Shown piece after piece: positions 1-52,964 of a DNA stretch of 64,000 nucleotides. Both the position numbers and the translations under genes were made by a program. The stretch comes from Podarcis liolepis (taxonomy: Eukaryota), in NCBI GenBank assembly GCA_965112155.1, contig OZ218098.1; one strand, 5' to 3'. The notes below the pieces were generated by a model. The model was not told the DNA's origin, made no database searches, and saw nothing but the letters and a program-made list of their open reading frames with translations. How positions within the stretch are numbered: position 1 is the first letter of the stretch; every line of letters starts with the position of its first letter.

Positions 1-3000
1 CAAATTCTCATGGAAATATTTCAGAACACTGTGATGCAAATTTTGATGGAAGCATATGTGATGATAAATGTATGCCAGTTAACTGCATACCTAAGGAAAA
101 AGAATCAATACATCCAGCAACCCCCCTGCCATTGGCAACAGCTGTGAAACTGGACCAAAGTACTATTATACCAAATGTGTATATTTTAAAAACACAAAAA
201 GTTGGGGGAAATTTGGAAGAAAACAGAGAAAGCCTAGAAGTGGATGTTTCACGAAATCAAGCTGAATTTCTATTGGAGAACAAATGTAGTCATTGGTTTT
301 CAAACAATGACACCGTGTTAAGTGATTTATCAGAAGAAAAGGAAAGGCTGCCTCTCATTTTTTCAAGGAATGAAATTTTTGATGATTCAATGTCCATTAA
401 CCAAACAGGTCCGCTAGAACACAGAAATCAAAACTATGGGTTAACTTCTGCGACTGCTGAAGACCTTTGTAATCAATCTGCATATAGTTCTTTGCTGCCT
501 GGAATAAGGACAGATGAAGAAAATATGAAGGGTGACTGTACTATAATAAGCAATCCTGAAATGCTATTAAGTAATAGTATCAACAACGAAGTAGTTCTCC
601 AGTACTATGAAACACAAATGGATAGTGACTTGCAATCTAAAATGTCACGTACCTTTAACAAAGTGGGGGGGAATGACTCACTTTCTGACATTGTCATGAA
701 TAATAAACGTATTGCATTTCCTCCTGATCAGCTAGAACAGAATGGACATGGGAAGGAAGACTTCATATCCAATAAAATGTCTAATTACACTGCAGCTGAG
801 CAGAATCCTAGTAAGGATGACACATTTTCAAAACCATATATTGCAGAGAGCCGTGTATCACTAGTATCAGCTACTACTGATGACCCACAAAACAAAGCTA
901 GTCCTCTCAAGACATTGTTTCCTTCTGAAAGTACAAGTGATGATACGGACAGGTTTCGAGGAGAATACAGCACAAAAGAAGAAGAAAAGTGTCTAAATTC
1001 ATTAAACACATCGCAAAAAGAAACTGCCACATCAGACTCATTAACCTCAGATAAAACAACTAGTTATCCCTCTTCAGGTTTCAGAGAAAATGTAGAAGAA
1101 GCAACACCATTGTTACCAGAGCTTTCTTCTCATGAGTGTTTTAACAGTATTGTCAGTCAGAAAGATTCATTAGTCCCATATGAACAGACAAATAAATCCC
1201 TAGGCACTGATTGCATCAAGACAGAATACAGAATAAATAGTATTGGAGAAATGGAGTGCCAACCAGAAACTAAGATTCGCATGTTCAGAACTTCTAATGA
1301 TCTTTGTATGGGGTGCTTAAATGACTCTATAGCAGTATCTGAGGATGGAGCAAAACTTTCAGGGTGTTCTGACCAAGCCCTATGGGGAAATGCTCATTTT
1401 GGTGAAGACAAAGCTGCAGGATGCAGGATGAGTTCTTATTTGTCTGAATACTCTGCTAGTCACTTGAACAGCTCAACAGTGCTTCCCACGCATTTGCTAG
1501 AATGCCCTACGGGCAACTACAAAGATGATGCTTTGTATTTTGGGGAAAGCAAATATTTGGACTCTGGCCTTTTTAATGTCCCTGCCTCAACTGTTGGTGA
1601 TTACTCTGTACACCACCAGCAAGACAGCAAAATCACTAATCCTAGTTATAGTAAAAATACTCAGCGAGTGGCGGAAATGTATCAGAAGGAAAACCAAGGT
1701 CAAGATTATTTCCCTGAATGTCTACATAAACAAGAAAATACTAAGTCTTCACAGCCTGGGGATTATGTGGATAGGACAGAAATAAAATTGCAAGTGGAAA
1801 GCTTGCTTCCTTATCAAAGTTTAGAGCAGATAGTTCTAAGTGACAAAGCATTGCCACCTGCTTTATTTTCAGTTGAAGATATCTCCACTAGTACTGTGCT
1901 TAAAAATGTGGACATTCTAGAGCCCCCAAGATCACCGGAAGGCTTCACATCTTCTCTCTATCCACCATATACTGACTCACTGCAGAATACGTTTTTGTCA
2001 ACTTCATTTCAAGTACAAGAAAGTCGAGCATTTTGTCATCAGGATTTTCCAAATGTTGCTTGCTTTTCTTCAGATACCTCTTCTAGCCTCAATACTAGTC
2101 ACAGTGATGCCAAGACACATGGTCCTCTGAATGCTGCTGCATCAAACTGTCCTGCACTTGACAGCAGTCTGATGCAGGAAAGCCAGTGTGACAATTCTGT
2201 GATAGTAGACCCACAGCCATGTGCTTCTGAAACTACTTCTTTTTCTCTTATGAAAGAACGTGGTTGTCTCCCACTTTCTGATACTAACTCTAGCTCTCAA
2301 GGAAACTCAGCTTTAGATTGCAGCGAAATACACGAATTTAAAACTGAAAAATTCCATTATGAAAGTGATGTTTGTGAAGAACCAAGGGATACAACTTCAG
2401 TGCAAAAGGGCTATTTGGAAAACATTGGCAAAACTTTACATCACACATCGCATTCAAGTCTTGATATGCAAGAAGATCAGAGTACACCACAGTTAAATAG
2501 CAGGGTTGATATAGACAACTTCCCTAATACAAATGCAAATAATCATATAATTGCACATAAGGTGATGAAGAGTAAGAGAGAATCTTTAATGTCGGAACAG
2601 CTAAATATTTCAATAGTAAATGACAGCATGGCCTCAAAGTATTTATCAGGAAGCAGCTGTTTGACTTTGCAGGAAGAACCTGCACCAGAGACAATTAAAA
2701 TTGAAAATGCAGTTTTTACTTCACAGAATTCAAACAGAAGCAAAGAAGATGGACAACGGCCATGTTTGCAGAGTCATAGCTTATCAGCACCATCTATTAC
2801 TGTTATATCTAATTTTGAGTGTGCTTCAGAAACTTCTAAAGTTGACCTTTCTGTACATTCTACCTCTAAGTCGTTACAAGAGTTAAATATGAGTGTAGAA
2901 CCACCATCTCCAACTGAGGATGACCTGCAAAGAGCTGAAAGCATACCCAAATTAAAGACAGACAATGTTGTGCCAGTTAAATATAAACCCAGATTTCAAA

Positions 3001-5722
3001 AGAAATCCATTCAAGCCCAGAGGTCTAATTACTGTGATAAAAGAAACCGTAGAGAGAGCACTCAGGAAAGTCACTCTTCAGATCCTTCCACTGCTCACTA
3101 TCCAGTGGCTGTTGCCCACACAACTGGCAATCCCATGGATACAGAAACAGAGAAATACTCAAATAATGTTTCTTTGGCACACCAACACAGTTTGAGTACA
3201 CATGAAGATCTAAGACATCAAATGGAGGCAAGAGACAATAAAGATGCAATGCACTTCAGTTCAAGCGATATCAACCCATATATCCACCCATGGCAGCAAG
3301 ATGAATGCTGCAAGATTGGTTGGAAACAATATGTTTTTGGAAGTGCAAGTGATGTCTCTAGTAACCCACCTCCATTGAGTTTGGATAATCAAGCAGTTAT
3401 GAGGTGCTCCAGTGTGGATAATGGTTTGAATTCTCAAATCTCCCCTTTCCGTTCTCATCTCAGTTCATATGCTAATGCAAGAATGTTATCCAGCACCATA
3501 AGTAGTACAGAAGATCTCCAGGGGTGGGATGTTGCAAGAGAAGGCTTTGACTCGACCCATTCAGATGAGAGTGGCAAGCCTTGTACCAACGTTTCTCATG
3601 ATGAACTTGAGGCTACACCAGAAAACTGCATTTCCAGATGTGAAAATGGTTCTCAGCAGTCTGGAAATGCTTCCATGCAAGTTGACGAAATTGTTCTTCT
3701 CTACCCTTCTGAGTCGGAGAAATCCTCCAATAAACCACAAGAACTACTCACTTGTGACCGGGAAACACAGACAGAGGCACCAACAAGGCATAGAAGGCAG
3801 AAGAGACACCGGAGAAGCAACACAGATATATCTGCAAGAAATCCTGAGCCAAGCAAGGATACATTCCAGCAGCCTTCTTCTTGGTCAAGCGTGCAGAATC
3901 TTTCCCTGCATCTTTCACAGCTGCTTCACAACACTTCTGAGCTGCTAGGAAATTTGTCGCTACAGAATGTTAAAGATAGTGAACCAAGTGACCATAAAGC
4001 GATTGGTGAAGAAAGCTCCAGAACCACTGTAACTGACAGCTGTACCCAAACAACAGAAGACATAGGCATTCAGACAGATATTTTAGGACATCTTCAGAAC
4101 AAAGACAAGGAAAGGACAATCAACACTAATGTAGAAAGTGAGACAATGAAGTCTCAGGAGGTAAATGTTATTGTGAAGTTAGTACATACAGATACTGTCG
4201 CTCTGACTAAGGAGAGAATGTCAGAAGGCATGGGACACAAATTGCAGGGCATGCTTGACCAGGGAAGCCATGATGATATCCCAGAAGATTCTTTTATGCC
4301 TCAGCCTTCCTTAAGTAGAGATTCCAGTTCTTCATCAAAGGTGCCAATAGTACCATTACATGCCCCAGCAGTACTTTTCCCTGTTGCATCTTCACTTGGT
4401 TCTAGACCTGAGTCTTCAGATGTTGTGGTTGGTAACCCTGCCTCTAGCATTTCTCTTTCTCCAGCATGCTACTCTCAGGACAGGAAGCCTGTTGGAAAAA
4501 CTGACATTCCAAGAATAAGGGATAATAGCTTGCTAGTTGACCGAGCCTCTTCCCCAATTTTGACTCTTAGTGCCACTCCAGTCAGCCAGAAACTTACATC
4601 AGGCAAGTCTGCTTGTTCTTTCAAAGGATCTGTTGGACAACGGAAACGTACTGCACGCTCAGAAACAAGTTTTAGGGAAAATGGTTCAGATCCACAATAT
4701 GACTTTGGAACTTGGGAGCCATGTGTAGACTCTTCTTCACAAACTGAGGTGGACAGTGAGTCTACCATGTCTAGAGAGAGCAAGGAAATGTACAAAATGC
4801 CTGAAGAGGGCTTTGATAACAATGCAGCTAGAGAATTTTCAGGTGCTTCAAAACAAAAGCACAGGTTTACTATTGACACGCATACTGCAGTTCACACCAA
4901 AAGGCTTTATCATTCAAGTAGCACTTTAGAACTTTCTAGCCATGGGGAATACTTAGTTGATGATCACAGAGAGGCTGTTCCAGTGGAACGTTCATTTCGT
5001 CAGATACGAGCCACGAGGAGGGCGAGAAACTTCTCTGGAGGAATCAAATATGAAAGTCCCATTAGAAAATCAGAATGCTCACCCACCAAAAAGTCATTTC
5101 AGAGATCGTTAAGTGAGACACCAGAATGTGTGCCTGATTCTTTTTCTCTGCAACACCAACAGACATGGAGAAACCAAAAGCACTGCCCTTTTCCAATGTC
5201 TGAAAGGAGCAGTGTGCAAGATGATGATGAAGATGATGATACAGGATCTGATACTGAAAGTGAGTGTAACACTGAAATTCTACTAAGTGAGAATACCTCC
5301 TTGGTAAAGACCCACAGATTTCGAAGCTACAGTCTTCGTGACCTGCCTCTGCACAATAAATTCAGCAACTGGTGTGGTGTGCAGGGAGGTTCCCGTTCTT
5401 CTTTAACTAGCCTGACTAGAAGTGCTGGTGATATCCACAGCCAGGCAGAAAGGAAGACCATTAACACAAGAGCATCTGAAGCAGAAGAGAGATCCCAGCT
5501 TAGTGAAAGGAGAGCCAGGGAGATTGAGGGGCTCCGAAGAGAGCGTGCCCAGATTATGTCTAGCATACACTTAGAAATGAACCAGCATCCTCTTACTGTG
5601 GAACTTACTGAAGCAAAGCTGAATTATGGCATTGGAGAAACAGATGCCCAGCTGAGGATTCTTCAGAGTGGAGTAGTCGAGGACTTGACATCAGTACCCA
5701 TAAAACAGCGACTCTATGAAAG
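1..5722 (+). CDS. STARD9: STARD9 giant internal exon (5'-truncated by the window)
   Basis: Frame open from position 3 (NSHGNISEH...) through the 1884-aa ORF; donor GAAAG|GTGAAT at 5722/5723, phase 2. Confidence 0.93.
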
Positions 5723-8700
5723 GTGAATTGCTTTACATTTAAAATAATAGAAAATTGGCTAGAAGTGGTGCTTTTCAGTCTTGAATATTTCTTCTTAATA
5801 AACTACATAATCTGTTGGGTGTATTTGTTTAGAACGGGGGGGGGGGAGGTTATTGGTTTGTTTTTGTTCTTATTTTTGTTTTGTATTTTATTATGTATTT
5901 TGTGTCTCTTATAATGTAATTCCATGTTGTGAACCACCCTGAGATCTATGGCTATAGGGCAGTGTACAAATTTAATAACAACAGAACCAGGTCTTCTGAA
6001 GACACAAAGCAGCTGCTGACAATAGCCTCCATGTGTCACATTCCCCCTTTCTGTAATAATACAGCCTCAGTTACCCAGTAAATTTTATATGAAGTATTAA
6101 CCTTTCTCTCCCCCCTCCCCATCCCCACTATAGGCACAGGAAGTCAATTGAAATACTGAGAAAGCAGCGGGAGGAGAAGCTTCAGTGTTTCAGAAGGAGC
6201 CGTAGCCTCAGCCCACAAAAGCACCTCAGCCTTTTGCAGACAGTGGAAACGAACCAGAGGGATTTAGATCTCCCTAGCCGCCGCCGCGAATACCTACAAC
6301 AACTGAGACGGGATGTTGTGGAAAATACAAGGTAGAGATGGCCAAGGGCCTTTACTGGTGTCAAAACACTCATATTGTATGACAGCACTGATGAGACATT
6401 TGAGGAGACTAGAAGATAGCTCATGTTCATGTTCCAGCCAGCTGAAGGCCTTATTTGATCCGTCTGAACTCTCTTCTCAGCCATTAAAACAAAATCACAT
6501 CTCAAGAAGGGTGGTCTTGGAAGTAGATAGAAGTATTTCTTTTCCTTCTTAGGTTGATGCCTCTCTTGGCTTCATTTCCTGGGTTGTTGTCAAACTGAAT
6601 TCTCCCCATAATCCTAAAGGATTTTTCAGTAGGGAAGAAGCACAATCCATACCACATCCCATGATTTCTGCTTGACAAAGATATTCTAGAATTGGAAAAG
6701 CTAAAGGAGAAAGCAATATTGTTATTATTTTGTAAAGTGCATTCTCATTCTAGTGTCATAAAGCAGTGCTTGCTCTAATATTTACCACTATTAATAAAAG
6801 ACAATGAGTGTAATGATTTTTTCATCCCCCCCCCCAAGAATTCAAGAACCAAAAAAGATCCAGCATCCTACAGAGATTGAGTTGCTGCTCCGAGATTACC
6901 AGAGGGCGCGAGAGGAGACCAAAATGGAAATTGCACGAGCCAGGGACAAGCTTCGAGAAAGAGCTGAGCAGGAAAAGAGGCGCATTCGAGAGCAGATGCA
7001 CTCTCAGCTACAGAAGGCAAGTTCTAAACCACTGAAGGTTGTGTCTATTTAGAGGCATGCGATGCAATAACCTTTCTAAAGCAAAGCCAGTACAGTATCA
7101 TCAGGGCTTGGATGAGAGACGGCATGGGGACCCCATGTATACCACCTTGGTTTCCCCAGAAGGAAAGTGGGGTATAAACACATTAAATAGGTAAAACACA
7201 GTTTATCACTCATGGAAATGGCACCCCACCCCAGTGTCTGAAGGTTTTGAGCTGCATCCACATTTTTGTCCTAAAAATGCTAAACAGTGTATAAACAAAC
7301 ATAATACCCTGCCCATCTGGCTGGGTTTCCCCAGCCACACTGGGTAGCTCCCAACGGAATATTAATGTTAATAATAAAAAAGTGATACACATCAAACATT
7401 TCTCTAGTAGTACAGGAGCAACTGACTAAAATTAACCAACAAAAATAATGATAATCACTTATTTCCATTTTTCAGAATTTAACTATTTAAGCTATTTGTC
7501 TATTATATACCCCCAAAATATGCATCCCACAAACAGGAAAAAAAATCCCAACTACAGATTCAGAAAGAGCCCCAGTAAGCCTGTGTACACACACATCCTG
7601 TAGATCCTCACACCTTTATTTGGCCAGATGCCCAATATTCCTCAGAGAAGTGAACTGAGGAGTAACTAATTTCCCCCATTTTTTGCAGAAACCACCTATG
7701 CAGAGTGCAAATTGATTGGTCCTTGTAACAGCTATCAGTTATGCTACCTCCTTCCTAGCTGGCTGTACAGTCTGTTAATTAGCAAACCCTTGTGGCGATC
7801 ATGAAGACACCCCCCCCTTGCCTGGAATAATGTTTCAAGGCTGTTGTTGTGTGTGTGTTGGTTTTAAAACCCTACATTTAAATTTTTATTTTTTAAAGAG
7901 GACTCTGGATAAAGATGCCAAGTGTCTGGAAGGGGTGGAAATCAGTGCTAGATTCAGAGTCAGGTGTGCATATCAGAGGAGAGAAAGTGGGAAGAAGAAA
8001 ATGCACTGGTTCCCATAGGTAGCTTAAATTTCTCATAAAGTTGTCAGTTGCTTATGTTTTCAGGAAATCTATTACTTGTATGTTAAGCAAAAGTGCAGAC
8101 AGGACCAGTCACTCACTTTAGCATTATTAGGTAAATTGCAAGCTGGAAAAAACGAAAAACTAAATCGAAATGAGATATTAAAAAAGAACTAGATGGAAAA
8201 TAAGCATCTTAAGTGGTTGTGTGAACAAACTCCAAAACTATTTGCTTTTCTAGAATTAATAACATTGGTCTATTAATTACAGGAAGAAACCAAACTGAAG
8301 ACCCTTGTAAGCACAAGCACTTTATGCACAGATTCCACCCTCAGTCTGTCTTCAGGACCAACATCTGGATACAACAGTAGTAACACAGCCACTTATCCTA
8401 CTAGCATCCTTGGCAAACAAGAATGCCAGGTAAAACAAAAACTTATGTGTCAAAGAAGCATAAGGGTAGTACAAATTGATGCTTGGCTTGTTGTTGTTGT
8501 TTAGTCGTTTAGTCGTGTCTGACTCTTCATGAACCCATGGACCAGAGCACGCTGTCTTCCATTGCCTCCCGCAGTTTGGTCAGACTCATGTTTGTAGCTT
8601 CGAGAACACTGTCCAACCATCTCATCCTCTGTCGTCCCCTTCTCCTTGTGCCCTCAATCTTTCTGAACATCAGGGTCTTTTCCAGGGAGTCTTCTCTTCT

Positions 8701-18638: not shown

Positions 18639-46258
<27,620 letters not shown>

Positions 46259-47054
46259 GCCCACCTCTCTCCTCCTCTAGCACTACCGCGCGGGCGAGCC
46301 TCCGGGGCGGGCGCGCAAGGAGCGTGGGCGCCACCCCTCGACGCCGTCCCAAAAGCCGCCAAAAAGCCCTAAAAAAAAGGAACAGCAAAAAAACACACCA
46401 CACACGGGGGGCGTGTTCTAATTCGCTTCTAACTCCGGGTTAGAGCGCAGCACGTGGAGGATGGGTGGGGAAAGAGAGAGGAGGCGCACTGATAGAACGC
46501 CAGGCGCGGGGGCCGCCAGGGAGAGCCAGCGCGCGCCCCACCCCGGACGCTCGCGGCCACCGCCGTCCCTCCCTCCCAGGGAAGGCGGGATTAGAGCAAG
46601 CGCCCGGGCAGCAAGAAGCGCGCGCGCGCGCCGGCCCTGCCCTGGATCCCTCAGAACCGCCAGTCTCTGGGAAAGTGGGCGTGGCCTCAGAACTCTCAGG
46701 CAGCAGCGCCCGCCGCCCGGCAAGGCTTCCCATTGGGAGGCGCGAATGCTTTAGTGGGCGGGGATTGGCGCAAATGTTGGCAGGGCGGGCTGAGAGGAGG
46801 AGCCGCCGCCGAGGAGCAGCGGCACCAGCAGCGTTTCCTCTCCCCCCCTCCCCTCCCGTGTCAACAAGCGGGGCGCCTGCGCCGGGGGTTTGCGCGTCTT
46901 TTCCTCTCATGCGCGGTATTTGCTTCCCGAGTCGGGCCCGGGGTTTGGCCTAGAGCCGGCGGCGGGCAGAGGGCGCAGCGCGATCGGGCGCAGCGCTCCG
47001 GCCGCAGCGGCTCCCGCCGGGCGGGCGATCGATCGGTCGGTCCGCTGGCTCAGG

Positions 47055-47508
47055 ATGGCGGACGACTCCCCGAAGCGGCGCAAGGCCAACTTCAACGAGG
47101 CGGAGACGGAGGTGCTGATCGAGCAGGTGCTGAAGCACGAGCAGGTGCTGTTCGCGGCGGGGCCCGGCCGGGCCTCCCCGGGGCAGAAGCGCAAAGTGTG
47201 GGAGCTGATCCGGCACAAGGTGAACCCGGTGGCCGCCTGCCCGCGCGAGGTGGAGGACCTGAAGAAGCGCTGGCGGGACCTCAAGCGCCGCGACCGGAGC
47301 AAGCTCTGCCGCGTCACCCAGGGGCCCGTCCCGCACCCGGCCTCGCTCGGCCTCCTCATGGCCGCCGAGGACATCTCGCCCCCCGACCACCTCCGATCCT
47401 ATGCCCCGGGGATGGCCGCCGCCGCCGCCAGCGAGGCGCTGCCCATCGTCGGCGGCATCGACACGCTCGACTTGCCCGGAGCTGCCGCCGCTTCGGTGGC
47501 GGAGATCG
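47055..47508 (+). CDS. Myb/SANT-like gene exon 1 (NLS-like PKRRK + Myb-like domain + GGIDT motif)
   Basis: 454 bp; strong GC3 codon bias; conserved F/W/W pattern of the domain. Confidence 0.88.
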
Positions 47509-50181
47509 GTGAGTAGGGAAAAGAGGGAGGCGGGCAGCAGGGAGCCCCTTTCTCTGGTGCGATCCTGCCTTTCCCGCCGGCGCAGGTCGGGGCTCCTTCT
47601 CTCACAGCTGGTGCCTTGTGTATGGGCTGCCCTTCTCACCCCACAAAACCTGGAAGCGGGGCGAGGGACCGCTTCCGTCCTCTACCCGCTACAGAGCTTT
47701 CCCTGCTGTGCCTTTTCTCTGTCCTCACAGCTTTTGGAACAGTTGCAGATGCTCAGGATCGCTCGCCATATCCCATCCCCGCTTTCCCCATTGACTGGGA
47801 TTGCGCCATAAAAAGTAAAAGTATCAGAAAGCTTGCCTCGAGGATAGGTTTTTAGGGTCCAAGAGTCGACAAGTGGACCTTTCTGTTGTGAAGGATGCTT
47901 TCACAAGGGGACAAGCGAATTATATGCTAAAGTTAGTGAGTCACTTGTGAACATAAGTTATCTAACTCAGTCTCCTCTACGCTTAAAGGCAAGGGTGCTC
48001 TGTCTCGGATGTTTCACACTGGAGTCTTTTGTAGTACTACTCCAGAGATGCTGGGGACTGAACCTTATCTATTTTTTGGCATATACTATATATTGCCCTT
48101 TTTACCTTTTGCATGCATGCCATGTTCTCTGCAGTCACCCTTGTGTTTTAATGTTAATCTGGAGGAGAAGGTGGAAGCAAGTCCATTTTAATTCAGTCTC
48201 CACTCTAGCTGAAATAAACATTGCATTGTTTCAAAGGCCAGGAAACTAAAAAAGCAATTTGCATATTACTTGTGAAAAATAGACCTTCGGCCTATTAAGG
48301 TGCTTGCCTATTTGTTTTTCCAACTTTTCATTCCAAGCACAGTCATCTAATACTCTTCACTTTTTTGCAAATGTTATTTGCTGTTAGGTACTCAGAACTT
48401 CAGTCTATGGGTATGTCTACATGCAACATGTCTAGTTTGCAGCTTCAGTTCAGAATTTGAAATGCCTGCAGCAGTATACAAAACGAGGCAGCATTTTTCG
48501 CCACCTTCCCTGTTATAGATTATCAGTCATTTGTACTTAACCAATGTGATGACCAGCAAGGGGTATTGGATAGGTGCTGAGCATCTTTTGTCCGTCCGTC
48601 CCCCCCACCCACATTTGTATCCCACCTCTCCCCCCAACTGCTCAGGATAGCACACATAGGGTGGTCAGATTTGAAATGATCTCACCAATTGTTGTCCTAC
48701 TCTTTGTTTTCTACATGATGCTAGCAAGGCATTCCGCTCAAAAAGCTTCTTCATCCCATTGAGAGTTTTGTTTCTCTGACACAATTGTGCATATGTTTCT
48801 TTTTAAAAGATGAGGAACTGTCTAATAATAACTGGGTGCAATCTTAATCACAGACCAAGGCATGATACATAATTTAGCTCAGGGATGGGGAACCTTTTTG
48901 ACCCTATGGGCCAACTTTGACAGGTGGGTTGAACAATCTGTCAGTCACCTGACATAATTATGGCAGTTATTGACAGGTGGGTTGTCCCACCCACCTGCAA
49001 AAATCTCTTGCATAAGGGTTCCAGAGTGCCCAGCAGCCTGCTGGTTGTCAGGTTCTTGGGAACGGCACCACAAACAGCTTAGCAAGTACCAAACACAGAG
49101 CTGGCAAAGCTGCTTTCTGCAGGAATTGGCTATGAGATCAAGTGCCACATGGGAAAACATAGCTAGTGGTACCATTGAATATCACTGTCTCTTTAAAAAT
49201 TATTAGAAGTGGTTTTTAAGTCCTTGAGCAGAACAGATGTCTTGTGCAACTTTTCTTCCTCACTGCTGTTGAAAATTGGGGAGGGGGCTCCAGCACAGAT
49301 GGGGGCGCAAGGGGCAAGAGCTATCGCAATGGCAGGTGTCACCTAATTAGCAGACACGTTTCATGTATATCTTAATCACCAGGTGAAGCTAAAAACTCAA
49401 TAAAAACTCTGTTGTCTAGAGATAAATGTAGGCAACATTTTATGTGGTTATGATAGGCTGGTAGCCAGAAGCTGAATCCCCAAAGAGAGTGAAGCCTAAC
49501 CTCTTTTCTCCCCCTCCTCTGTTTTTAGGTTTTACAGATGATCCAGGTCCGTCCCACCAGCCGTGTGTGGAGAAGATGAATCTAAAAGAAGAAATAGTAG
49601 TCAAAGTCGTGGAGCCAGAAGAAAGTTCAGAGGACATGTCTGTAGTTCCTCCTAGCCAGGAGCCACTCCCTTTTTTGGGGTTGCCAAATGGAGGCCCCTG
49701 TGGAAAAGTAAAAGCCAAAACAAAAACTCAGCCCCAGATAGACCCCAGTGAAATTACAGAAGAGGATCTCCTGCAGATCCAACAGAACCAGCTCCACATC
49801 ATCCAGTCTGGCTTTGATACAATCAACCACAATCTCCGGCTGCTGCAGCAAGGCATGCAAGATCTCAACAACAGCCTCAGCATGGCAGCACATACTTTAG
49901 TGGCGATTAAAAATGTCTACGTGAAAAACAATGCTGGCCCAACCACCTTTGCTACGGTGGCTACTCAGACCACCTCGGGGTACTTGAGCCCTGGGTCCCC
50001 ACTGGTGGAGGACAGAATCAGAGCACCAATGGCTGGAAGCAGTAGCAGAAGCAGCAGCAGCTGCAGCTCCAGCTCCATGTCGCAAGAGCCAGGCCCGTCA
50101 GAATTCCCCAGGCCCCCCCACAGAACCATTAAGAAGGAGCATCCCAATGGCTGTTACTATTTCTGTTTTGCAGATGTGTAA
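47055..50181 (+). CDS. Myb/SANT-like DNA-binding domain protein (Myb_DNA-bind_5 type; NAIF1/MYPOP/tSNARE1-like, Harbinger-related), 2 coding exons, ~368 aa
   Basis: Exon 1 47055-47508 (ATG in AGGATGG context; RKANFNEAETEVLIEQV...KRKVWELI...VN...REVEDLKKRWRDLK; G|GTGAGT donor) splices in phase 1 to exon 2 49529-50181 (pyrimidine tract + TAG; coiled coil; TAA). No frameshifts or stops. Confidence 0.88.
49529..50181 (+). CDS. Myb/SANT-like gene exon 2 (acidic region, coiled coil, Ser-rich tail)
   Basis: 653 bp open frame matching the exon 1 phase; alternative acceptor gives a start at 49538. Confidence 0.85.
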
Positions 50182-51011: not shown

Positions 51012-51017
51012 AATAAA
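51012..51017 (+). terminator. Candidate polyadenylation signal of the Myb/SANT-like gene
   Basis: AATAAA ~830 nt after the stop, preceded by ATTAAA at 50991 and followed by TG-rich sequence. Confidence 0.5.
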
Positions 51018-51672: not shown

Positions 51673-51830
51673 TAATAATAATAATAAGAAGAAGAAGAAG
51701 AAGAAGAAGAAGAATTTATTATTTATACCCCACCTATTTGGCTGGGTTTCCCCAGCCACTCTGGGCAGACTCCAACAAAATATTAAAATACAATAGTCCT
51801 TCAGATATTAAAAACTTCCCTAAACAGAGC
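51673..51830 (-). mobile_element. L2-type 3' end with (AAT)n(AAG)n tail
   Basis: ttatttatacccc...ggctgggtttccccagccactctggg; the same motif occurs at ~7305-7355. Confidence 0.65.
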
Positions 51831-52682
51831 TGTAGATATATGGGACTGTTTTCCTTGGATGTATAGCTATATCACTAGATCTCAAAGCGGACAGCCTACC
51901 AATTGGGTGCAGATTGGAAAGGAAAAGGTATTGCATTCTGAAGCCTTTGCTCCATGGAAGACTGAAGGAGACAGGAGCAACTTTATCAACACCAGATTTA
52001 GAAAATAATGTATATTTCAAATTTAATATACAAATAAAAATAAATATGGCATAACATAATCTATGGAGAAATTGAGGCAGAGGGTAAGCCACTTTAAGAG
52101 GGATTCTTTATAAATTTTGGTTGAAGAAATATTGTTAGAACAGAACATCTGTGCATTGCCAATGGTAATAGTGTGGTCCCCAAGTGTTTCAAACACATTA
52201 CACATAATCATTTCCTCCTTTTATTTATGGGCTGGCTCTAGAGATTCAACCACAGTTTGTTTCTCAGTATCAATATTAATAAATGTTTTTGATGTAATTA
52301 GGCTTCTGATAACATAAGCTAATCTCATTTTTTAAAAATGTAATACCTTTTGTCTCAAATCATAATTAAGTTACATATTGGGAAATATGCAAACACCCCT
52401 CCCCAAAGAAGAACAAGTCAGTTTAGAGCCGAGTGGGGGAAGCAATGTTTTGTGCAACCTCATCCTTACAATGTTGTATGGGAACAATTATTTGCAGCAG
52501 AGGGGCTATACATTGCAGCAGGCTACACATTCCTTCTGAGGCAGATTTAGAGGAGCATGACCAGATTGGGCACAACAGAACTTGAGAGGCAGAGGAGTGC
52601 TGAATTTTGGCATCGCACAGGGTGCCGCTCAAATTTGAGACCCCAAGATCCACCAACAATTCCTTAAACCAAAGCCTTAAGC

Positions 52683-52787
52683 CAGCAGTTCTCAACCTGT
52701 GGGTCCCCATATGTTGTTGGAGCTGGCTAGGAATGATAGGAGTTGTAGTCCAACAACATCTGGGGACCCACAGGTTGAGAAACACTG
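52683..52787. mobile_element. 105-bp palindromic hAT MITE with perfect TSD
   Basis: Long inverted arms; 8-bp TSD CCTTAAGC at 52675 and 52788. Degenerate relatives at ~18290-18420, 19442-19578, 28627-28755, 32064-32190 and 63457-63587. Confidence 0.88.
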
Positions 52788-52964
52788 CCTTAAGCCTTCA
52801 GGTAGCTTTTACCTGTCCCCTGCCTTGTTGCTATGAAACACACAAATAATCTGAGACAGATGTTGATGATGGAACAAAATCAGCATGGATGTTTAGCCTC
52901 TCTTGCAATTACAGATTGAGCAAGACTTTTTGGGACAAGACAGCTTACTCTCTTGTGATAATGA

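Follow-up and report, generated by a model that had tools for sequence, protein, structure and literature searches.

A single-copy Myb/SANT gene beside CDAN1 in Podarcis liolepis, a probable member of the domesticated PIF/Harbinger class

Introduction

What kind of gene stands next to CDAN1 in the lizard Podarcis liolepis? The window analyzed here, a stretch of 64,000 nucleotides from contig OZ218098.1 (assembly GCA_965112155.1), carries at positions 47055 to 50181 what we call the Myb gene, two exons that encode a protein with a Myb/SANT domain. An initial annotation, made from the letters alone, had taken it for a fixed host gene of PIF/Harbinger transposon descent. It could also be the reading frame of a transposon copy, the lizard orthologue of a characterised gene or the outcome of a host gene duplication. 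Our analyses support the view that the Myb gene is a fixed host gene. We regard it as probably a single-copy gene that has been fixed since the lungfish–tetrapod ancestor, that stems from a PIF/Harbinger Myb-like gene and that acts as a DNA-targeting adaptor or as a regulator of transcription or chromatin.

PIF/Harbinger Myb-like proteins bind DNA, carry the transposase into the nucleus and recruit it, and NAIF1 keeps these properties with HARBI1 (PMC9392472). NAIF1 and MSANTD1–4 are treated as domesticated Harbinger Myb-like genes, TSNARE1 and MYPOP as putatively Harbinger-derived (PMC9392472). The screen that yielded this catalogue of transposon-derived genes started from human proteins (PMC9392472) and could hence not have seen the Myb gene; in general, a gene that is absent in mammals escapes transposon-gene catalogues built from human proteins. 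We found no mention of the Myb gene in the literature, neither under the name 'partner of profilin-like' nor under its LOC identifiers, and papers on MSANTD5 and MSANTD7, judged by their titles, concern no sauropsid or amphibian gene. The Myb gene appears to be unstudied so far.

Gene structure

The Myb gene is a real and intact two-exon lizard gene. It runs on the plus strand from an ATG at 47055 to a TAA at 50179–50181, and its exons join in frame across well-formed GT/AG borders. Coding exon 1 (47055..47508, +) holds 151 codons plus one base and is 98% identical to residues 1–152 of the Podarcis raffonei protein P0069. Coding exon 2 (49529..50181, +) consists of two bases, 216 codons and the TAA, and its product matched a Podarcis muralis protein with an E value of 4e-139. 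Together, 454 + 653 nt make 1107 nt, i.e., 368 codons and a stop, so that the start, splice sites, stop and length of about 368 amino acids proposed initially all check out. The phase 1 intron in between (47509..49528, +) measures 2020 nt, runs GT..AG and contained neither a conserved ORF (open reading frame) nor an Rfam match. Its donor reads atcg/gtgagt (47508/47509), and its acceptor, tttttag/gt (49528/49529), is preceded by a long pyrimidine tract. The codon split by the junction, g/gt, encodes Gly, and at this place the orthologous database proteins read VAEIGFTDD. Database protein models of the orthologues employ the same exon 1/exon 2 junction; together with the splice sites and the CpG island described below, they suggest that the gene may be transcribed and spliced.

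The gene call is made because of this homology and not on the basis of ORF length. The exon products were searched separately, with P0069 and the P. muralis protein P0001 as full-length stand-ins, which are 98–99% identical to the window and not exact matches. The window contains no N runs.

Orthologues and vertical descent

Three word-indexed protein searches, whose queries were exon 2, the Myb region and the full alignment, returned orthologues of 350–378 amino acids spanning both exons from squamates, turtles, birds, caecilians, salamanders and lungfish. Among the squamates are lacertids, geckos, a skink, agamids, iguanians and a snake; the others comprise turtles, many birds, two caecilians, three salamanders and the lungfish Protopterus, and the alligator is represented by a partial model that covers exon 2. 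All told, over 60 species between lungfish and birds have an intact orthologue. Indels in the alignment were all in frame, without a frameshift in any species, which together with the intact reading frames and the nearly unvarying Myb domain lends indirect support to purifying selection. Identity to the lizard in exon 2 amounts to 83–89% in other squamates, 82% in a turtle and 75–80% in most birds (67–81% over all birds), and among amphibians to 67% in a caecilian and 49–53% in salamanders.

Copy number and phylogeny agree with this picture. A tblastn search found one copy of the Myb gene within the window, and each orthologue cluster lies on one contig per assembly. In the maximum-likelihood tree, squamates, birds, salamanders and caecilians each form one well-supported group, and amniotes are united with support of 94/97. 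The gene tree is congruent with the species tree, and terminal branches within the amniotes are mostly 0.003–0.1 long, with few up to 0.18. The single copy, its confinement to one contig per assembly and the species-like tree fit vertical descent of a constrained gene.

To the C-terminal 60% of the protein we assigned a profile of 239 positions made from exon 2 and scored it against 1.84 billion representative proteins, with E values up to 0.001. It matched five proteins, namely two from Anolis and one each from axolotl, alligator and lungfish, all of which are orthologues. From this it follows that the C-terminal 60% is private to the Myb gene. The three word-indexed searches, which covered predicted proteins, returned no orthologue from mammals, frogs, ray-finned fish or cartilaginous fish, and metagenome contigs, scanned for host-derived copies, yielded none. 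The gene may have been lost from mammal and frog genomes. Its observed range is patchy, with lungfish, caecilians, salamanders and sauropsids on one side and mammals, frogs and ray-finned fish, where it was not seen, on the other.

Some database models at the orthologous locus look like annotation artefacts. The N-terminus of P0013 (Anolis, 'ONECUT3 isoform X2') resembles a +1-frame reading of exon 1 in the window. In P0061 from the bald eagle Haliaeetus, an N-terminus with a Runt domain is fused to the Myb gene, apparently by error, and an isoform from the ptarmigan Lagopus muta (P0088) is longer by about 85 residues at the exon junction, as if intron sequence had been retained.

Domain and motif architecture

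The exon-1 product matched the Pfam family PF13873 (Myb_DNA-bind_5) with 76.1 bits (E 2e-21; gathering cut-off 21.7 bits). The match extends over residues 9–85 and profile positions 1–77 of 78, and the orthologues score above the cut-off as well. The domain named in the initial annotation is therefore present, as a trihelix-type Myb/SANT domain at 47079..47309 (+). In an AlphaFold model of the P. raffonei protein, built on an alignment of 18 species, this part folds into a three-helix bundle with helices in residues 15–88 and a block-mean predicted local distance difference test (pLDDT) score of 72–91 over residues 11–80. Foldseek placed it nearest to the DNA-binding domain of Zeste on DNA (5cqq, template modelling score 0.68) and to the plant GT-1 trihelix domain. 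The AACPR.VEDLKKRWRDLKRRDR block of the domain does not vary from lungfish to birds in the 18-species alignment save for one D/E position, and the Myb block as a whole is nearly unvarying over roughly 400 million years. A sequence profile search of the PDB found no relative. The Myb protein would most likely be a nuclear, sequence-specific DNA-binding protein.

Two short conserved elements accompany the domain. On its N-terminal side lies the basic patch PKRRKA (47070..47087, +), within SPKRRKANF, which is identical in 18/18 aligned orthologues; its composition makes it a candidate nuclear localisation signal. On the C-terminal side, at 47439..47480 (+), follows the linear motif LPIVGGIDTLDLPG, which contains the GGIDT noticed initially. 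It is conserved in the orthologue alignment and aligns weakly at the same position of the coelacanth protein P0114, which is discussed below. The linker between the domain and this motif (window 47415–47432 and 47481–47495; alignment columns 180–245) varies by in-frame changes of repeat length only. Its Ala runs vary among lacertids, as the window, P0001 and P0069 differ by 1–2 Ala, and in birds the linker holds His runs that reach 7 or more residues.

The exon-2 product matched no Pfam family, SNARE included. Its most prominent element is a long amphipathic helix (exon-2 residues 77–134; 49759..49932, +), modelled by AlphaFold as a single helix of 58 residues (230–287 of the P. raffonei protein) with pLDDT 90–97. 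In about eight heptads, the a positions are occupied by L, L, F, L, M, L, L and Y and the d positions by Q, I, I, L, L, A and I; in the best register, 12/19 scored a/d positions are L, I, V, M or F. The coiled coil expected at the C-terminal end thus has its counterpart in one high-confidence helix with hydrophobic heptads. It is probably a coiled coil and may serve in self-association or in the binding of a partner.

Apart from the helix, exon 2 encodes a series of conserved linear motifs. The first, LKEEIVVKVVEPEESSED at 49582..49635 (+), contains the sumoylation-type consensus LKEE, a hydrophobic core and a tail of acidic and Ser residues. LKEE does not vary from lungfish to birds, and the remainder of the motif nearly so. 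The serine-rich tract SSSRSSSSCSSSS (50038..50076, +) is conserved from salamanders to birds. At the C-terminal end, IKKEHPNGCYYFCFADV (50128..50178, +) joins a second sumoylation-type consensus, IKKE, to a Cys/aromatic tail. This tail, NGCYYFCFADV (50146–50178, +), is unvarying from caecilians to birds with V or M as the last residue; it has no predicted structure and is not a CaaX box. Neither the exon-2 profile, scored against the same 1.84 billion proteins, nor the PDB sequence profile found a relative of the tail outside the orthologues. Further conserved short motifs in disordered parts of the protein are GKVKAKTK and TQTT.GYLSPGSP. From their consensus, LKEE and IKKE would be sumoylation-type sites, and IVVKVV with the adjoining acidic/Ser tail could be a SUMO-interaction-like element.

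Origin and function

We propose that the Myb gene stems from a PIF/Harbinger Myb-like gene, a descent suggested by its domain family, its architecture and its nearest non-orthologues. It may be direct or may lead through duplication of a copy that was domesticated earlier. With the Harbinger Myb-like (ORF2) protein the Myb protein has in common the domain family and, presumably, DNA binding, nuclear import and binding of a partner through a helix. The Myb gene differs in that it is single copy, contains an intron, has a CpG-island promoter and has descended vertically for about 400 million years, and in that it has no transposase gene, no terminal inverted repeats (TIRs) and no target site duplications. 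The only non-orthologues found near to it are the coelacanth LOC102353983 (P0114, 541 amino acids) and a lungfish protein named 'tSNARE1-like' (P0115, 543 amino acids). Both contain PF13873 only and no SNARE domain. In hhalign comparisons, P0115 shows 47% identity over 76 columns and the alignment ends where the Myb domain ends, while P0114 shows 34% identity over 143 aligned columns and the alignment continues weakly to the GGIDT-like motif. The block VEDLKKRWRD is common to all three.

In the proposed scheme, transcription would begin in the CpG island, divergent with CDAN1, and the protein would enter the nucleus through its N-terminal PKRRKA patch. There the trihelix Myb domain would bind specific DNA, and the eight-heptad coiled coil would join the protein to itself or to a partner. 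The linear motifs, i.e., the two sumoylation-type sites, the SUMO-interaction-like core, the Ser-rich tract and the Cys/aromatic tail, may then recruit cofactors, possibly in a SUMO-dependent manner. The Myb protein would thereby act as a DNA-targeting adaptor or as a regulator of transcription or chromatin, comparable to NAIF1, MSANTD3 and the plant proteins ALP2 and HDP2. For MSANTD3, ALP2 and HDP2, recruitment of chromatin complexes has been proposed (PMC9392472).

Several points weigh against this reading. The case for a Harbinger origin is solely one of family membership. DNA binding and dimerisation are predicted, as are the SUMO motifs, and about 57% of the AlphaFold model has a pLDDT below 50, the protein being disordered outside the Myb bundle and the helix. 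The absence from mammals, frogs and ray-finned fish concerns predicted protein sets and not genomes. Moreover, P0114 and P0115 look like single-locus genes, which keeps a host gene duplication alive as an explanation.

Such a duplication, of a domesticated or never-mobile Myb_DNA-bind_5 gene, for example the ancestor of the coelacanth and lungfish 'tSNARE1-like' genes, would have given a fixed host gene that then gained a new C-terminal half, with no separate Harbinger domestication behind it. We hold it to be a real possibility, if a rather unlikely one. P0114 and P0115 come from single loci, are about 540 amino acids long and show the same layout of Myb domain, long linker and C-terminal helix, besides the common VEDLKKRWRD. 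In addition, maximum likelihood could not split MSANTD3, MSANTD4 and NAIF1 into separate domestications (PMC9392472). Beyond the Myb domain, however, the likeness to P0114 and P0115 breaks off, and the C-terminal motifs belong to the Myb gene alone. Coelacanth and newt genomes are moreover rich in Harbinger elements (PMC5741667), so that P0114 may itself be encoded by a transposon.

A more specific scenario reads the Myb gene as a separate domestication of a coelacanth-type Harbinger Myb-like gene some 400 million years ago, in the ancestor of lungfish and tetrapods, locked into a bidirectional promoter pair with CDAN1, acting as a SUMO-linked chromatin regulator and lost independently in mammals and frogs. 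We consider this combination unlikely. CDAN1 regulates the histone chaperone ASF1. If the scenario were true, the Myb protein would be a vertebrate regulator invisible to all human-centred screens.

The Myb protein could also do a job like that of NAIF1, i.e., serve as nuclear-import and DNA-targeting partner of HARBI1 or a HARBI1-like nuclease instead of being a stand-alone transcription factor. Both Harbinger Myb-like proteins and NAIF1 bind and import transposase or HARBI1 (PMC9392472), and the Myb protein retains the NLS-like patch (NLS, nuclear localisation signal) and the Myb domain as well as a long interaction helix. The likeness to NAIF1 comprises the N-terminal basic patch, the Myb_DNA-bind_5-type trihelix domain, a disordered linker and a C-terminal helical interaction region (for NAIF1, PMC9392472), and both are single-copy host genes without TIRs. 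Yet HARBI1 persists in mammals, where the Myb gene was not found, and the Myb protein is thus not an obligate partner there. Its C-terminal half has no detectable similarity to NAIF1, and the exon-2 profile search returned no NAIF1-named or mammalian protein. NAIF1, a gene of jawed vertebrates, occurs in mammals and fishes, whereas the species with the Myb gene were all lungfish, caecilians, salamanders or sauropsids. A NAIF1-like role strikes us as distinctly doubtful.

That the Myb gene is simply the lizard orthologue of MYPOP, NAIF1 or TSNARE1 is highly improbable. Entries in NCBI and UniRef are indeed named 'MYPOP-like', 'NAIF1-like' or 'tSNARE1-like', and PF13873 together with a Myb-plus-helix layout is common to all of them. 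These automatic names, however, are inconsistent across species within a single orthologue group. Moreover, the exon-2 profile matched orthologues only, no mammalian protein was returned in the three word-indexed searches, and a SNARE domain is missing, all of which bears out the earlier remark that the C-terminus resembles no named member. The closest Myb domains found are those of P0114 and P0115, which we group with the N-terminal Myb-like domain of TSNARE1; the syntaxin/t-SNARE domain at the C-terminus of TSNARE1 is absent both from the exon-2 product and from the full-length orthologues. The lungfish possesses an orthologue of the Myb gene (P0064) and separately the 'tSNARE1-like' P0115, whose alignment is limited to the Myb domain (47%). 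MYPOP (p42POP) is the commonest automatic name among the orthologues and is built along the same general lines, with a Myb-like domain at the N-terminus and a leucine-zipper-like helix behind it. No search returned MYPOP-named proteins other than the '-like' orthologues, or mammalian proteins. MSANTD3 and MSANTD4 are grouped with NAIF1 as Harbinger-derived, and MSANTD3, too, is traced to the base of the sarcopterygians (PMC9392472). Both occur in mammals, where the Myb gene was not seen. Identity as a NAIF1, MYPOP, TSNARE1 or MSANTD gene is ruled out by the exon-2 profile, which is private to the orthologue group.

Least credible of all, and nearly negligible, is that we are looking at the Myb ORF of an active or recently dead Harbinger copy instead of a host gene: the domain family would fit and a palindrome resembling a miniature inverted-repeat transposable element (MITE) lies 2.5 kb downstream, but the gene occurs once in the window and once in each assembly, has intact orthologues from lungfish to birds with a species-like tree, shares a CpG-island promoter with CDAN1 and is bracketed by no TIR pair, with no transposase domain in the scanned ORFs. 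In that scan, 20 ORFs of at least 90 amino acids yielded no Pfam domain and hence no DDE transposase. It covered 8/10 ORFs of this size in 50.2–64 kb, one ORF in the intron and 11 upstream; the ORFs 42265–42741 and 42819–43112 (+) are among those outside it, as are a few of this size near the gene. No inverted-repeat pair bracketing the Myb gene was found, and the window had no match in Rfam. The earlier statement that no transposase ORF and no TIR pair were found around the gene agrees with these results, and its status as a fixed host gene is supported by the intact orthologues, the tree, the want of transposon features and the CpG-island promoter.

In our preferred reading as a fixed host gene of Harbinger descent, the Myb gene would add an old and strongly constrained member to the domesticated Harbinger-Myb (Myb_DNA-bind_5) class. 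Several features make it interesting: it is old, tightly constrained, paired with CDAN1 and apparently lost in mammals, and its C-terminal half is unique. It lends itself to studying the role of such adaptors and which factors take over after their loss.

Neighbouring genes and flanking sequence

Two matches to Codanin-1 on the minus strand identify CDAN1 as the neighbour, as had been expected. Residues 3–28 of the ORF 46088..46264 (−) align, beginning with MAAVLE, to Codanin-1 residues 1–26 (PDB 9imz) with E values of 0.02–0.04 and mark the start of CDAN1 exon 1 (46181..46258, −; ATG 46258–46256). In the ORF 42845–43489 (−), residues 2–36 match Codanin-1 residues 45–79 (E 1.3e-11) and define exon 2 (43382..43486, −), with an acceptor near 43525 and an ORF that continues to 42845. 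The first codons of CDAN1, about 40 at most, hence stand on a separate exon, followed by an intron of about 2.6 kb and a large next exon. CDAN1 and the Myb gene are arranged head-to-head and divergently, with about 0.8 kb between their start codons (46258 and 47055).

Both starts fall into one CpG island (46000..47510; G+C content 0.62–0.73, CpG observed/expected 0.91–1.02, flanks 0.55–0.67), which contains CDAN1 exon 1 on the minus strand as well as the leader and exon 1 of the Myb gene on the plus strand and thus agrees with the CpG-island first exon noted initially. A bidirectional promoter is the natural reading of two divergent starts inside one island, and the two genes probably have such a promoter in common.

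A conserved stretch of about 35 nt in the leader or promoter lies at 46893..46930 (+), 125–160 nt upstream of the ATG. It appears translated in three frames in over-extended models from a pigeon (P0047), a caecilian (P0062), another bird model (P0059) and a Logan contig (P0039), and is probably a promoter, transcription start or 5′ untranslated region (UTR) control element. In the window, an upstream ATG at 46909 opens an ORF of 14 codons, out of frame with the main ORF.

At the far end of the window, the ORF 72–5726 (+) encodes 1884 amino acids without a Pfam domain. Given the gene order STARD9–CDAN1–TTBK2, it may be the giant disordered exon of STARD9; the Pfam scan of the 20 ORFs identified neither STARD9 nor TTBK2.

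Downstream of the Myb gene, the first AATAAA after the stop (51012..51017, +) is a possible polyA signal, which would make the 3′ UTR about 0.83 kb long. The hexamer named in the initial annotation is thus present, but with 123 occurrences in the window it is too frequent to carry weight, and we dropped it as evidence for polyadenylation. The MITE-like palindrome (52672–52798) has arms of 50 nt that are 88% complementary and a spacer of 27 nt, and it does not bracket the gene. About 10 perfect (AAG) units form a microsatellite at 51686–51714, in what is presumably the 3′ flank.

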